Assembly (NCBI GenBank): GCA_025594325.1
Contig: JANHCV010000001.1
Span: forward strand, 1,612,001 to 1,676,000
DNA: 64,000 bases
Direction of reading: 5' to 3'
Source of the DNA: Blastocladiella emersonii ATCC 22665
Taxonomy: Eukaryota > Fungi > Blastocladiomycota
Numbering within the stretch: position 1 is the first letter of the stretch; each line of letters starts with the position of its first letter. Below, piece after piece: positions 1 to 6,324 of this stretch. The notes beneath the pieces are model-generated. The model was not told the origin of the DNA, did no database searches, and worked only from the letters and a program-made list of their open reading frames with translations. The translations under genes and the position numbers were made by a program.

Positions 1-1143
1 AGGACGTGCTGGAAGGTGCGCTTCTCGAGGAACGTCTTGCACGCGTACTTTTCCCAGGGCACCTGTTGCGGGCGCGGAAGCGGAAGCGTGTCAGCTTGGT
101 CGCGGTGAAGTGAGAGCGGCAGAGACGTACGTCGGCGAGTTGCGAGTACCAAGTGTGCGGGGCGCACTCGAGGAGCGCAACGTCCTTGCGCGTCTTTAGG
201 CGCTGGGTGATTGAGGTTCGTGTCAGTTCTGCACCGACAACGCGCGCGCGCGAGGTGAGACAGGAAGCGTACACGTAGCCAGTCGCCGTTCTGAAAGCAC
301 TCGTTCCAGTCGTCGTAGCCGACAATGTCCTCGTGGTCGCGGTGGCGCGCGCGCGTGGCCGGAGCCGCGCTGGTCGTCGCCGCGGCGCGCGGCTGGTCGC
401 GGGCCTTGGGGTCCTTGAAGGACGCGTTGCGCAGGACGAGGTAGGTCGGGCGCACGACGTCGGCGAGAAAGGACGGGCGGCCGCCGGCGGCGTCGGGCGA
501 GGGCGACGCGTCGCCGTGGAGCAGGTCGAGGAGCGCGGCGTGGAAGGTGAAGGCGAGGAACTCGGGGCAGAAGCGCAGGTTCGCGGCCTCGCCCCAGATC
601 GACAGCCACAGCAGCACCTGGGCGAGCAGGCGCGTCGACGACTGGGTCTCGGGCTGCAGGCTGGCGAGGTGCGCCTCGGCGCGGGTAGTAGGCGTTAACG
701 CGGGCGCTCCGTCGTCACCGGGTGGCGCAGCAGCAGCGGGCGCGGTGGGTGCGGAAGAGGCCTGCGAGAAGAGGGCCGCAGCAACGGACGGCGAGCGGAC
801 CCACTGGGCGTAGTTGGCGTGCGGGCCCGAGACGTACTCGCGGTGCACGTCGGCGAGCGCGGCGGCGTCTGAAACCGCGCGCGAGCTGCGCGAGAGCAGG
901 ATGCTCGTGATGAGGGCGACCTGATGGCAAGGAAGGTGAGTGATCTGTCGGCCACCACGCGATGATGCATGAGCGGCGAGCACGCACCTGGTTGGCGACG
1001 CTGGCGGGCTGGAAGCCGAAGCGCTGGACGAGGTAGGCGGCGAGGTCGCGCAGCTCTTCTCGCCAGTCCATGGCGGGCGTGGCCGAGCCCGTGTGGCCGC
1101 CAAGGCCGCTGTCGACGTCGTTGCGGGACGGCGGGGCCGTCAT
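1..1143 (-). CDS. FKS1: 1,3-beta-glucan synthase (FKS1/callose synthase family), 5' part; runs off the left edge
   Basis: The spliced translation (introns ~987-921, 272-203, 130-63, all GT..AG) gives QRFGFQPASVANQ, LLWLSIWGEAANLRFCPEFLAF, GYDDWNECF and KTFLEKRTFQHV. These match the conserved FKS1 N-terminal domain motifs (FGFQ..NV.NQ, WGEA.N.RF.PE.L, YDD.NE.F, KT..E.RS..H). Confidence 0.88.
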
Positions 1144-2404
1144 GGTGTATGGGCGCGGCGGCGGGATAGTGTATGCGGGCCAGCGGCGCGCGTGGGGTAT
1201 AGAGCAAGGGAGCAGGTGGCGGTCGAGCGAGGGCGTGCGAAAGTGTGCGATGCTGCCGGGCAGCAGGGGGGCGGCGACGGCGTCGAGGGGGGCGGCGACG
1301 GCGTCGAGGGGGCCGTCGTTCGTGACGGCGAGCCGAGCGGGCGGGGAGCGGCGGGAGCGCGGGCACCCCGCCGTCGCGCGCGCCGTGGTCGCTCGGGCAG
1401 GGCCGCGTGTGTGTCACCGGCATGCCGGCGCGCCGTGTCTCATGCCCACCCACGCGCGATCATGGCGGCGAGACCGGGTCGCGGCCTGGGCCAGGGTGAG
1501 ACCTTGGCGGCGACATGGGTCACGTCGTTGCCCCGAGCGATCGGCGGGGCACGTCGAGGAACACGTTGCGGCGCGGCGCGCGCCTGGTCGCGCGAGGCCA
1601 CCGATGCCGCTGCTGTCGTCGCCGAATGTCTCACGGCGTGTCTCGCGGCGCGAGGGCGCGATCACGCGCGGCGCTTGCAGGTCGAGCCGGCGGGTGAAAT
1701 GCATCAAGTTGGGAGGTGCATGAAAGCGTCTGGAAGAGGCAAGTCGGAGCGTGAAATGGAGCGAAGCGGTCGGGCGGTGTGAATGCGCGAGCCGGGTCGC
1801 GGCGACGGCAGGTGGGCCAACAAAACGCGACCCCACACGACGCGATGCGCCACACGCCCGTGTGCTCACCTGCCTGATCGCCGCGTCGCCGCAAGTCGCG
1901 TTGGTCGGTGGCCAGCGACGGGCGCTTGCCGGCGTGGGACGGAACTTGGACGCTAGCCTCTCGCTCTCACGTACTTGTGTAGTTGGCTGCCGATGAGGGA
2001 AGCAAATGCAATCTGAGCGCCAACTTGTGCTAAACGCGTTCCTGCTCGCCTCGAGCGTCCCTTCTCGCTTGCGTGAGATCGCAGCTCGGAACCTCGATCC
2101 GGGGCACGATGGAGCGTGCGCCGGCTCCATGAGAAGTGCTCATTCGCGATCTTTGCGACGCCTCGGGCGCCCATGAGAACAGTACCCAACGAGCGGCCGT
2201 GGAGCACCCGGACCGCCATTGACGGGAGCTGCTCGGCCCTTCTCGAACGAGAAGCGCTCGCACCCTCGTCGCTCCCGCCTTGGTCGATAAAAGGCCCGCA
2301 GATCCCCGCCCTCTCGCCTTCAACGGCATCGACGGACCCTACCCGCCCTCGAGACCTCCTTGCGCATCCACCAACACTCTCACCACCCGCCCAACTCTTA
2401 CAAC

Positions 2405-3469
2405 ATGGCGACCATCGGCTACGGCAGCGCGGACTACTACGGCGACGTCCTCGCGGGCTACGAGTCGGGCTACTACGGCGACTACTCGGCGGCGGCTGAG
2501 GGCGCGTACGAGGCCGGCTACTATGGTGACGCGGCAGCGGCCGAGGGCGCGTACCAGTCGGGTTACTACGGCGACGCGGCAGCGGCCTACGAGGCCGGCT
2601 ACTACGGCGACTACTCGGCTCCGGCCGATGCCGCATACGTGGCCGGCTGCTATGGCGACTACGCGGCGCCGGCCGATGCTGCGTACGAGGCGGGTTACTA
2701 CGGCGACTACGCGGCGGCGGCTGATGCCGCGTACGAGTCGGGTTACTACGGCGACGCGGCGGCGGCCTACGAGTCCGGCTACTATGGCGACGCGACGGCG
2801 GCGTACGACTCGGGATACTACGCCGATGCGGCGGCGGCGGCGTACGACTCGGGATACTACGCCGACGCGGCGGCGGCTGATGCCGCGTACGAGTCGGGTT
2901 ACTACGGCGACGCGGCGGCGGCCTACGAGTCCGGCTACTATGGCGACGCGACGGCGGCGTACGACTCGGGATACTACGCCGATGCGGCGGCGGCGGCGTA
3001 CGACTCGGGATACTACGCCGACGCGGCGGCGGGGTATGACTCGGGTTACTACGGTGACTATTCGGCGGCGGCCGATGGCGCATACGAGTCGGGCTACTAC
3101 GGCGACTACGCGTCCGCGTACGATCCCGGATACTACGGCGGCGGGTACGAGGCCGAGCCGGCCGCGGCCGACTACACGACGGGCTACGGCGCCGATCCGG
3201 CCGCTACCTCGACGGGATACGCCGGCGAGGGCGTGTACGGCGAGTCGGGCTACGCGGGCTACGAGTCGTACGGCTACGACGCGGGCGCCGACCTGACCGC
3301 CGCGGGCGCCGAGGCGTACGGAACCTATGATCCGGGCTACTACGGCGGTGGCGAGAGCTACGCCTACGACTCGGGCTACTACGGTGACGCCGCTATCGCG
3401 TACGATGCCGGGTACTATGCTTCTGGCGAAGCGTACGCGGGCGACGCCTACGCGGGTGGCTGCGCCTGA
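2405..3469 (+). CDS. Intronless Tyr/Gly/Ala/Asp-rich acidic repeat protein (~354 aa), unknown function
   Basis: ATG at 2405 follows a pyrimidine-rich leader and a GATAAAAG box near 2286. About 19 Y[ED][SA]GYY[GA]D units; third codon positions are GC-rich in this frame. Synonymous variation between units (TCG/TCC, GGC/GGT/GGA) while the peptide is kept supports real coding. Confidence 0.72.
   Translation: MATIGYGSADYYGDVLAGYESGYYGDYSAAAEGAYEAGYYGDAAAAEGAYQSGYYGDAAAAYEAGYYGDYSAPADAAYVAGCYGDYAAPADAAYEAGYYGDYAAAADAAYESGYYGDAAAAYESGYYGDATAAYDSGYYADAAAAAYDSGYYADAAAADAAYESGYYGDAAAAYESGYYGDATAAYDSGYYADAAAAAYDSGYYADAAAGYDSGYYGDYSAAADGAYESGYYGDYASAYDPGYYGGGYEAEPAAADYTTGYGADPAATSTGYAGEGVYGESGYAGYESYGYDAGADLTAAGAEAYGTYDPGYYGGGESYAYDSGYYGDAAIAYDAGYYASGEAYAGDAYAGGCA
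2711..3032 (+). repeat. Perfect 156-bp (52-codon) tandem duplication inside the YG-repeat gene
   Basis: 2711-2866 is identical to 2867-3022 by direct reading, plus a partial third start to 3032. Confidence 0.9.
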
Positions 3470-3816
3470 GCAGAGGTGGGCTATGTACCCGTCGGTTTTG
3501 TTCCTCGATTTTCCTCTCCCTTGCTCAAGACAATCCACGCCCTCTTTCCCTCTGGACTTGCACTTCAATACCACAGACGACGCGTTCTTCTCTTCTGCCC
3601 GACTTCTCTCTTGAGGCGAGCGGCAGTGTGGCGCAGCGCGAGGCGCGTTCGTCCCGCCGATCGTTTCAGCACGGCGGCGTGACATCAGGTGGGCCCGATT
3701 TTCTCCAACTTTGCTTTCGTCGGCGGCCGCTTTCTCGGCTCGCACCACGTACCCATCGGGATTCAGGCCAACTCCATTGACGCCGTCCCCGCGCACTCTG
3801 TGCAACCGCCACCGCC

Positions 3817-4407
3817 ATGTATTCCATGAACGCTAGCCGCCACGCGGTCCGGGCCGGGCACCGCGCCATGTCGTCGGCGATCCCGACGGCGACGACCGCG
3901 ATCCCGTCGAAGCCGGCGCTCGGCGAGATCTCACTGATGCCGACGAAGCCACTCGCTCCGCTGCCCATCAAGCTCAAGGCCAAGTCGCTGACCAAGCTGC
4001 AGCCGGCGGTGGCGACGCTGGCCGACGGCACCACGGTTCACCTGAACGCGGCCGCGTACGCGCCGCAGTTCACGCGCGAGACGCTGCCGCCGCCGTCGCA
4101 CAAGTTTGCGGCTACGTCGCTGGCGGCGCCTGGCGCGGACCCGATCGAGCCCCGCGTGCGCAAGGACCTGTCGCTCGCCGAGATCAGCGAGATCCGCGCC
4201 CTGCGCACCTCGGACCCCGACACGTGGACCGTGCGCAAGCTCGCGGCCAAGTTCGGCGTCTCGGGCGTGTTCATCTCCATGGTCGCGCGCTGCCCACCCG
4301 CGCGCCTCGCCAGCCTCGCCGCCGTCGAGGAGGAGCGCGTCGCGCGTCTGCCGCCATCGACGCTCCACCACATCCGCGAGCGCCAGCGTCGCCGCGAGCA
4401 GTGGTAG
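3817..4407 (+). CDS. MRPL20: Mitochondrial large-subunit ribosomal protein mL58 (fungal MRP-L20 family)
   Basis: Presequence-like N-terminus and LSLAEISEIRALRTSDPDTWTVRKLAAKFGVSGVFISMVA, matching the MRP-L20 core (LT.E.I.EIR.LR..DP..WT...LA.KF..S..F...V). Confidence 0.8.
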   Translation: MYSMNASRHAVRAGHRAMSSAIPTATTAIPSKPALGEISLMPTKPLAPLPIKLKAKSLTKLQPAVATLADGTTVHLNAAAYAPQFTRETLPPPSHKFAATSLAAPGADPIEPRVRKDLSLAEISEIRALRTSDPDTWTVRKLAAKFGVSGVFISMVARCPPARLASLAAVEEERVARLPPSTLHHIRERQRRREQW

Positions 4408-4496
4408 GGGTGCTCTCGTGCGGTCCCGCGTCGGTTAGCTGTTTGTTTCGATCTTACTATAAATATTGTCTACTTGTTTCTATCTCCACGCATCCG

Positions 4497-5969
4497 TCAG
4501 CCCTCAACCTGGATCCCGCAGCCGAGGCAGTGGTCGCCGTCATACAGGACGAGGACCTGGCCCGGCGTCACGGCGCGGACGGGCGTCGCGAATCGCACCG
4601 TGTAGTGGCCGGCGTCCCTGTTATGTGAACGTCGATTCTGTTAGTGGCCGTTCGCACGATGACTGTCGCAGAACCACACGTACGCTTGCTCGATGGTGCA
4701 CGGGACGGGTTCCTGGCGGTACCGGATCTGCGCGGACAGCGACGGGCTGCCGGCGAGCGCGCGGGCCTCCTCGCTGGGCAGGATCCAGCGGATCCACTCG
4801 ACGCGGACGTGGGACGAGTACAGGGCAGGATGGTCGCGGTCGGGAACGAGCAAAATGTCCCCAGTCTCGCGGTCCTTGCGCGCGACAAAGTACTTGGTCG
4901 CCTGGCTGTGGATCTTGGCGTTCTGGCCGATCGTGTACTTGGCGAGGCCGTCGTGGGGGCCTGGGAGCACCAGTTTAGTATCCAGTGATGGTAGGAGCGG
5001 TGCTGTGAGACTCGTACCAAGTACGCGGCCGTCCTCGAGCACAAAGTTACCCTTGGTCTGCTCAATGTAGCCGTCTAGACTCGCCAAGGATGTGAGCGGA
5101 AGACTGAGATCCCGATGGGTGAGCGGGAGCATACCCAAAAAGTCGCCAAACCGCTTGCGTTTGCCGATGAAGCAGATCCCCATGCTCTCCTTCTTGTTAG
5201 CAAACTTGGCGAGGCCAATCTCGCGCGCGAGGTCCTTGACCTGGTCCTTGCGCGCGTGGGCGAGCGGGAACAAGACCTGCGGCAGGACGCGGCCGTCAAT
5301 GGACGCGAGAAAGTAGCTCTGGTCCTTGTTGGCATCGAGGCCGCGCGCGAGGTGGAACTGGCCCGGCTCGCTCGCACACGGTTCACGGCGCGCGTAGTGG
5401 CCCGTCGCCAAAAAGTCGAAGCGCGGCTGGCCCGGGATCGACGCGGCGCCCTTGACGAACAGGCGGCGGTACAGGGCGCCGAACTTGATCTCCTTGTTGC
5501 AGAACACGTCCGGGTTCGGCGTGAGGCCGTCCTGGAACGCGGCGAGCACGTCCTCGAACACGGCGCCCCAGTACTCTTTCACAAAGTCGACGCGGTGGCA
5601 CTCCATGTCGAGCGCGCGACACGCCGAGCGCACCTCGGCCCAGTCGGCGTCGCTCGTGCACACGCCCGTCTCGTCGACGGCGTCCCAGTTCTTCATGTAG
5701 ATGCCGGTCACGCGCGCGCCGCGCGCCTGGAGAATGTGCGCGCACACGGCGCTGTCGACGCCGCCCGACATGGCCATGGCGACGTGCGCGCCGCGCGGGA
5801 CGTGTTCGGCGAGCGCCCACGCGGGCAGCGTCGACAACGAGCGACGCGCGGGAGTGGACGCGCTAAGCCACCGCAGCTGCAGGCCGCCAAGCGCGCGACG
5901 GGCGGCGGCGGGGCCGGGAGACAAAGCAAGAGCGCGGTGTGCCAAGCACAGGTGTTTCATGAGGTACAT
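4497..5969 (-). CDS. SLM3: Mitochondrial tRNA-specific 2-thiouridylase (MnmA/TRMU/MTU1)
   Basis: [51 protein letters not shown] and C-terminal [22 protein letters not shown]. Introns 5134-5075, 5017-4961, 4683-4618. Confidence 0.95.
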
Positions 5970-6324
5970 TTGGCCGGCCCGAGGTGTGGGGACAGCGGGA
6001 GGAGCAGGGGCAGCGGAGGCGGGGAATCGGCGGCCTCGGAGAGACGGGGACTCACGTCGCTGATCGGCGCGGCGCACGTGACGCCGGAGTGGCTGGGCCG
6101 GGTCACGCGGCGGGGGCGCGTCGTGCCATCACCTCGGGCGGCGACGTGGCACCGGCGCGACTGCCCCACTGCGGGGAAGGCAACCGCCCTCTGCTCGCCG
6201 TTCGCTCTCTCTCCCGCCCCTCTCTCGACTCGTCGCACTCTATCGCTTCCATCCATCCGCTCCGCGCACTTGCATTGCGCTCTCCGCCCTCCCCCTCCGC
6301 CTTGACCGCCCCACCACCGCCACC

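Follow-up and report, generated by a model that had tools for sequence, protein, structure and literature searches.

Tyrosine-rich low-complexity repeat proteins are a known kind of protein. In the low-complexity domains of FET-type proteins (FUS, EWS, and TAF15), Tyr acts as the "sticker" in a Gly/Ser-rich disordered chain, and in the spore coat of Bacillus subtilis the leaderless, Tyr/Asp/Lys-rich proteins CotC and CotU are assembled inside the mother cell. Tyr-rich repeat proteins that become cross-linked include trematode eggshell/vitelline proteins (PMC11727788), GYR-motif nematode epicuticlins (PMC9612446), and insect resilin (PMC7794388), and hydrophilins are defined by a Gly content of >6% and a hydrophilicity index of >1 (PMC11277543). 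Here, we report a Tyr-rich repeat gene of the blastocladiomycete fungus Blastocladiella emersonii ATCC 22665 (assembly GCA_025594325.1), located at positions 2405 to 3469 of a 64,000-nucleotide stretch of contig JANHCV010000001.1 (positions 1,612,001 to 1,676,000, forward strand; hereafter the window) and lying head-to-head with the glucan synthase gene FKS1. We read its product (the window protein) as a divergent member of a 13-locus family that acts inside the cell as a disordered, Tyr-sticker polyanion, and we put the probability of this reading as a whole at about one-half. What is new is a Lys-free variant with Ala linkers and without the partner gene that accompanies at least nine of its paralogs.

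The window protein resembles each described system in part. Like FET-type domains, it has regularly spaced Tyr in a predicted disordered, Gly-rich chain, and multivalency is a plausible shared principle; it differs in showing no homology, in being strongly acidic where those domains are near neutral, in having only three [GS]Y[GS] triads, a single Gln, and no RNA-binding domain, and in consisting of repeat throughout. With eggshell proteins, epicuticlins, and resilin it shares tandem repetition, disorder, high Tyr content, variable repeat number, and Tyr as the reactive residue; however, those proteins have signal peptides and act extracellularly, whereas the window protein has no signal peptide and none of the Lys or His residues that quinone tanning employs, and neither it nor eight paralogs carry TES, GYR (PF02756), or chitin-binding R&R signatures (Pfam, E ≤ 1). 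Hydrophilins and other late embryogenesis abundant (LEA)-like proteins resemble it in being disordered, rich in Gly, cytosolic, and probably required in large amounts, but no LEA class comes near the window protein in Tyr content, and there is no LEA/dehydrin Pfam match. CotC and CotU share the extreme Tyr and Asp content and the missing signal peptide, and provide a precedent for an intracellular, Tyr-cross-linked layer; they are nonetheless bacterial, short, Lys-rich, not built of tandem dodecamers, and without homology to the window protein, and we know of no comparable intracellular coat in Blastocladiella. Fungal repeat-peptide precursors (dikaritin-type ribosomally synthesized and posttranslationally modified peptides [RiPPs] and Kex2-processed repellents) have a signal peptide and, separating their repeats, dibasic KR processing sites, both of which the window protein lacks.

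The protein is composed of 104 Ala (29.3%), 81 Tyr (22.8%), 63 Gly (17.7-17.8%), 38 Asp (10.7%), 23 Ser (6.5%), and 19 Glu (5.4%) residues, with Asp and Glu together making up 16%; Lys, Arg, His, Asn, Phe, and Trp are absent, and only two Cys are present. Between the N-terminus (MATIGYGSADYYGD) and the C-terminus (GGCA), 19 cores (regular expression Y[EDQV][SAP]G[YC]Y[GA][DG]) are spaced 12 to 16 residues apart and separated by 12 Ala runs, each 3 to 5 residues long; a gap of 69 residues lies between cores 17 and 18. Tandem Repeats Finder (TRF) returned arrays with periods of 36, 48, and 156 bp (scores to 649) in the open reading frame (ORF), and the pair of 156-bp blocks is a recent in-frame duplication. 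The hydrophobic core of a signal peptide was not found in MATIGYGSADYYGD (maximum 9-residue Kyte-Doolittle mean, 0.71 over the first 40 residues). Translation, residue counts, and hydropathy thus reproduced the first-pass annotation of this DNA, which had described a protein of ~354 residues with ~81 Tyr (~23%), ~19 cores, poly-Ala linkers, a GGCA end, no Lys, Arg, or His, and no evident signal peptide.

Since the window is 68.7% GC, long open frames come cheaply, and an antisense frame (positions 2339 to 3805) is open for 488 codons. GC content at third codon positions (GC3) was 0.856 in the plus-strand frame of the ORF versus 0.59 to 0.67 in four of the five other frames; the fifth had a GC3 of 0.859 but contained 55 stop codons. 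Across the 19 cores, first and second codon positions had nucleotide diversities of 0.076 and 0.095, and third positions one of 0.353 (ratio of third to first and second, ~4); the core units therefore diverged synonymously, with Y1, G4, Y5, and Y6 essentially invariant. The Tyr codons comprise 73 TAC and 8 TAT (7 independent events), with no change to CAC (His), one internal TGC (Cys), and no TAA or TAG; GC pressure would favor Tyr-to-His and Tyr-to-Cys transitions, yet the Tyr codons were kept. Such patterns of codon change point to purifying selection acting on core Tyr and Gly residues. Tyr makes up only 1.0 to 2.5% of the products of two neighboring genes. The start context (ACAACATGG) was graded good, a TATA-like box 5' of the ATG is a putative core promoter element, and neither an upstream in-frame ATG nor an exon candidate was found after that box. 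A bacterial promoter/terminator scan, a tool unsuited to eukaryotic DNA, was empty.

The genome (32.65 Mb, 21 contigs) was searched in six frames with the window protein and then reciprocally. Twelve further loci matched (E values, 3e-26 to 1e-12), and the reciprocal search of a paralog against the window gene gave an E value of 1e-28; a genome scan for the core DNA pattern returned 184 matches versus 0 in a reversed control, and known family loci account for all of those listed (100 of the 184). The first-pass annotation, which had treated the gene as a unique system, missed these 12 loci. Paralogs start with MTGYGYG[DGS]DS, continue with 7 to ~40 units of GY[DE]SGYYGDDS[K/Y], and end in SGYYGDGC[H/C/S]; they are 101 to 509 residues long, with 25 to 29% Tyr, 0% Ala, and 1 to 7% Lys (at most one Lys in each 12-residue unit). 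The window protein aligns in register with them, with invariant M1, GYG, Y-S-G-Y-Y-G-D, and terminal G-C columns, and shares the M-x-x-GYG start, the Y[DE]SGYYGD core, the Gly-Cys-X-stop end, a single exon, strong acidity, 23 to 29% Tyr, and a TATA-like box ~120 to 160 nucleotides upstream. No family member with a preserved start has a signal peptide (12 loci read).

The window copy differs from the paralogs in several respects. Paralogs are 85 to 95% identical to one another, whereas the window protein is ~55% identical to them. They have Lys and, at at least nine loci, a partner gene, and their units are joined by hydrophilic DDS[K/Y]G linkers (DDSK/DDSYG) in which Lys recurs; in the window protein, the linkers are Ala runs (no Lys; Ala, 29% versus 0%). 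Codon bias is also weaker in the window copy, with TAT at 10% of Tyr codons versus 0 to 4% in paralogs, and GC3 is lower. The absence of Lys is thus a peculiarity of this copy and not a family trait. DDSK-type linkers were replaced here by Ala (GCN) runs, through changes that all raise or leave unaltered the GC content; with that replacement, Lys was lost and the grand average of hydropathy (GRAVY) rose from approximately -1.7 to -0.41. The window gene is therefore the family's single divergent, relocated member, a variant rather than a typical representative.

Directly upstream of at least nine paralogs, tblastn identified a homologous same-strand ORF (47 to 100% identity between copies), so that the two genes form a pair that duplicates as a unit. 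This partner ORF had no Pfam family at E ≤ 1 and no tblastn match in the window, even at E ≤ 10 over positions 1 to 5000. Paralogs share near-identical promoters and 5' untranslated regions (UTRs), with CC[GC]ATAAATA at -122 to -158. The TATA-like box of the window copy lies at a similar distance (119 versus 122 to 158 nucleotides), and its flanks showed no significant, collinear similarity to those of paralogs by BLASTN. A promoter shared with the paralogs was considered and rejected, MAFFT having anchored somewhat near the TATA-like box and BLASTN having given no significant collinear similarity; 3' UTR homology was judged unconvincing.

Three family loci are visibly damaged, at G000:C21:227750-228226 (L025), G000:C11:1482201-1482611 (L023), and G000:C11:955288-955443 (L028); one copy has an in-frame TAG and lacks an ATG, another ends in a frameshifted nonrepeat tail, and a third is cut short after ~4 repeats. 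The Tyr-repeat family therefore undergoes birth and death. Two further copies, G000:C1:1350850-1351644(-) and G000:C1:1355740-1356534(+) (L016/L017, L033), have identical scores, stand head-to-head ~4.1 kb apart, and each have their own partner ORF, an arrangement that points to a recent inverted segmental duplication.

Relatives were also sought outside this genome. For nine members (the window protein and eight paralogs), Pfam gave no family at E ≤ 1; a profile search of the PDB and searches of the ESM Atlas gave no matches; and the window protein and one paralog, used as queries of a protein word index, gave a single match, P0001, which was spurious. A hidden Markov model (HMM) profile of the family returned 118 matches among 1.84 billion cluster representatives (E ≤ 1e-3, down to 3e-31). 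These were rejected as homologs: they are unrelated repeat proteins in which GYYG/SGYY arrays are absent and Tyr does not exceed 11.5%, and in most of the 16 that were read, all of them tandem arrays, the period is 12 residues. The 118 matches are a periodicity artifact of a 12-residue-repeat profile, and E values from repeat-profile HMMs need inspection at the level of the motif. The back-translated core pattern had four isolated chance matches in metagenome contigs and no arrays; one of these lies on a microbial contig of a gut-metagenome assembly, where ~100 codons around the match were translated. In the literature searched, the peptide motif occurred only in antibody complementarity-determining regions (CDRs), and such Tyr-rich proteins go unmentioned in the B. 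emersonii expressed sequence tag (EST) and genome papers. The family, for which no homolog was detected beyond its own genome, thus appears to be lineage-restricted, although genes left unannotated in sister species would escape these searches, and sequence divergence is rapid in low-complexity families. The description of the protein as undescribed held up, with no match to a characterized family in the Pfam, PDB, ESM Atlas, word, or profile searches. That the ORF is a genuine single-exon gene and a divergent member of a lineage-restricted, 13-locus family is, on this evidence, very probable.

With the family alignment as input, AlphaFold2 gave the window protein a mean predicted local distance difference test score (pLDDT) of 36, a predicted template modeling score (pTM) of 0.12, and no secondary structure, and the protein is predicted to be intrinsically disordered. 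Its net charge is approximately -57, without a basic residue (family range, -20 to -90, with 23 to 29% Tyr), and it contains 20 overlapping YY pairs but few [GS]Y[GS] triads. We propose that the protein stays intracellular as a disordered polyanion, in which the regularly spaced Tyr-Tyr pairs would serve as multivalent stickers and the acidic and Ala segments as spacers. Through Tyr contacts it might associate with itself, with paralogs, with cations, or with basic partners, giving a gel, condensate, or protective shield at a stage or stress that needs bulk protein quickly. The multicopy family and the TATA-type promoters fit such rapid bulk demand. The Ala linkers would give the window protein different, more cohesive material properties. 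We hold this sticker-and-spacer mechanism, which is drawn from composition, only tentatively.

Several observations weigh against the proposed intracellular role. The window copy has no partner gene, no Lys, weaker codon bias, and no flank similarity that BLASTN can detect, features that are compatible with relaxed constraint. The conserved C-terminal Cys and the 23% Tyr also suit a cross-linking substrate. Set beside the hydrophilin definition, the Gly content of the window protein is well above 6%, but its hydrophilicity index is 0.41, versus 1.3 to 1.7 in paralogs (GRAVY, -1.3 to -1.7); the long, Lys-rich paralogs exceed both values (Gly, 25 to 26%; index, ~1.7), and a simple LEA-like role therefore fits the window protein less than it fits the paralogs. 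Exact-product look-ups with the window protein matched no transcript, protein, or assembly record, in a search set that may miss the records of this genome.

The main rival, which we regard as unlikely, is an oxidatively cross-linked structural precursor, in which tyrosinase or peroxidase would turn Tyr into 3,4-dihydroxyphenylalanine (DOPA)/quinone or dityrosine and the family, once tanned, would form an insoluble, melanin-like matrix in the wall of the cyst or resistant sporangium, with paralog Lys and terminal Cys as nucleophiles. Blastocladiella resistant sporangia are melanized. The consistently high Tyr of all members, kept by selection, the invariant C-terminal Cys, and the one Lys per unit of paralogs would all suit such chemistry, as would the large number of tyrosinase loci in the genome (at least 12, with 17 PF00264 matches), and trematode eggshells are an established case in which Tyr-rich repeat proteins undergo quinone tanning via DOPA-Lys/His links (PMC11727788). 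However, no member with a preserved start has a signal peptide, the window protein offers neither Lys nor His and only two Cys, no family member has a tyrosinase locus within 100 kb, FKS1 adjoins only one of the 13 loci, and a profile search did not detect the family in other Blastocladiomycota, fungi that form walls of this kind as well. A related proposal, protein-based sclerotization, would make the family the substrate of the expanded tyrosinase set; bypassing classical secretion, it would build up a tanned, melanin-like proteinaceous layer or granule in the resistant sporangium or cyst, the window protein being a distinct block with silk-like Ala segments that is cross-linkable only via Tyr and Cys; we consider it quite improbable. 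The tyrosinase (PF00264) loci of the genome include C11:1913907, C6:571201, C15:898111, and an identical inverted pair, C1:4190146(-)/C1:4203731(+). No open-access paper on Blastocladiella melanin was found.

It is rather improbable that the window copy is instead a decaying paralog under relaxed constraint, copied away from the gene pair, with linkers drifting to GCN (Ala) under GC pressure and with little or no function of its own. Such decay would be in keeping with the absent partner ORF, the lack of detectable flank similarity to highly conserved paralog promoters and UTRs, the degenerate C-terminal third, GC3 and codon bias below those of paralogs, the three visibly broken loci elsewhere, and linker replacements (D, S, K, and G to A) that all raise or keep GC. 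Yet 354 codons stay open although each of the 81 Tyr codons is one transversion from a stop (with the caveat that openness was itself the criterion by which the ORF was chosen), the start, the core, and the Gly-Cys end are all kept, third-position diversity is ~4 times that at the first two positions in the cores, and the TATA-like box is at the family's usual distance. Insects have Tyr storage forms, and by analogy a Tyr-rich acidic protein could be a soluble reserve of poorly soluble Tyr for a burst of melanin or wall synthesis, degraded afterward; high Tyr with solubilizing acidic residues, the multicopy family, and the expanded tyrosinase set would agree with this. A reserve would need neither a conserved repeat core nor the N-terminus and C-terminal Cys, there is no sign of regulated turnover, and the family is lineage-restricted, so that we judge it very unlikely. 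Least credible of all is that the ORF is either no gene, being an open frame arising from GC-rich tandem-repeat DNA, or a polyprotein/RiPP-type precursor cut into peptides. Open frames are indeed cheap in repeat DNA of 69% GC, as the 488-codon antisense frame illustrates, and the regular units bring repeat-peptide precursors to mind; nevertheless, the plus-strand frame is the one marked out by GC3 and by codon-position asymmetry, start and stop are conserved across 13 loci, and a product with no signal peptide and no Lys or Arg at all has no Kex2-type sites.

Features of the window gene, its neighbors, and the partner ORF are listed below.

Coordinates of the Tyr-repeat gene and associated features (positions in the window unless prefixed by a locus label)
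Feature	Position	Strand	Basis or remark
Coding sequence, single exon, 354 codons + TGA	2405..3469	+	Translation, composition, in-register paralog alignment
TATA-like box, GATAAAAG	2286..2293	+	119 nucleotides 5' of ATG; no ATG between box and 2405; putative core promoter element
Family N-terminus (MATIGYG in window protein, MTGYGYG in paralogs)	2405..2425	+	M1 and G-Y-G columns invariant in alignments
Main tandem array, 12- to 16-codon units, higher-order periods of 48 and 156 bp	2459..3137	+	TRF scores 282-649; 17/19 cores
Exact tandem pair of 156-bp (52-codon) block	2709..3020 (2709-2864 = 2865-3020)	+	Exact 168-nucleotide run at offset 156
Degenerate C-terminal third, residues 239-350	3119..3454	+	2 canonical cores; still Tyr/Gly/acidic
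Family C-terminus, Gly-Cys-X-stop (window GGCA*, paralogs GDGC[H/C/S]*)	3455..3469	+	G and C columns invariant in all aligned members
FKS1 (Pfam FKS1_dom1)	3-1139	-	E = 6.9e-18; first ATG/exon start at 1143
Divergent spacer, FKS1 to repeat gene	1144-2404		1261 bp
MRP-L20 (mitochondrial ribosomal protein)	3817-4407	+	E = 8e-18; ATG 347 bp from repeat-gene stop
MnmA/SLM3-type tRNA 2-thiouridylase	4641-6077	-	E = 4e-66
Partner ORF	L037:7098-8705; L038:7405-9141; L029:8150-9414	+	Homologous ORF 5' of Tyr-repeat copy
Partner ORF, further upstream occurrences	L011, L012, L013, L014, L016, L017, L024, L025, L027

The spacer to FKS1, which the first-pass annotation had given as ~1.26 kb, agrees with the measured length, and the two genes downstream of the repeat gene are ordinary housekeeping genes. 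Flank reading covered one 10-kb side of each paralog; the readable flanks contained a Sec2p-type guanine nucleotide exchange factor (GEF), an isopropylmalate-synthase-like HMGL/LeuA-type gene, a Ty3/gypsy pol, a pAdhesive_15 domain, and a DUF3684/sacsin-like gene, and no FKS, glucan synthase, chitin synthase, or wall gene. FKS1 adjacency thus occurs at 1 of 13 loci and is not a family trait. Because of this count, and because the window copy has its own core promoter element, the head-to-head arrangement with FKS1 is most likely coincidental.

These results change how the earlier proposals for the gene are to be read. Coregulation with glucan synthesis is unsupported, given the paralog flanks free of wall genes, the gene's own TATA-like box, and the partner ORF at at least nine paralogs; a secreted wall or cyst protein is weakened by the lack of a signal peptide at the 12 loci read and of Lys/His for quinone tanning; and a new wall system was not borne out. 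From the alternative of an intracellular granule scaffold, it is the intracellular scaffold that fits the data.

Two of the paralog flanks contain further ORFs. About 4 kb 5' of the C11:1772722 family copy, L034:2096-5953(+) (G000:C11:1765095-1768952) is an uninterrupted, 1,286-residue Ty3/gypsy-type pol ORF with protease, reverse transcriptase (RT), RNase H, integrase, and chromodomain regions, and may be a young retrotransposon. The pAdhesive_15 (ice-binding-like adhesive) domain (E = 5e-34) lies in L035:8365-9351(+), 3' of the broken C11:1482201 copy, and the adjoining L035:3815-7939(+) is a 1,375-residue, high-GC3 ORF without a Pfam match.

For annotators, the adjacency to FKS1 should not be taken as functional linkage. 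The window protein has no tryptic sites and would therefore be invisible to standard trypsin proteomics. In the window copy, the Tyr-Tyr core was kept while charged, Lys-bearing linkers were swapped for short Ala runs, a natural experiment that would be useful for asking what role linkers play in phase behavior or cross-linking chemistry. If expressed, the family would be among the most extreme natural Tyr-rich polyanions, one that has no detectable relatives and whose expansion to 13 loci took place in a fungus that is a classic model for zoospore differentiation.

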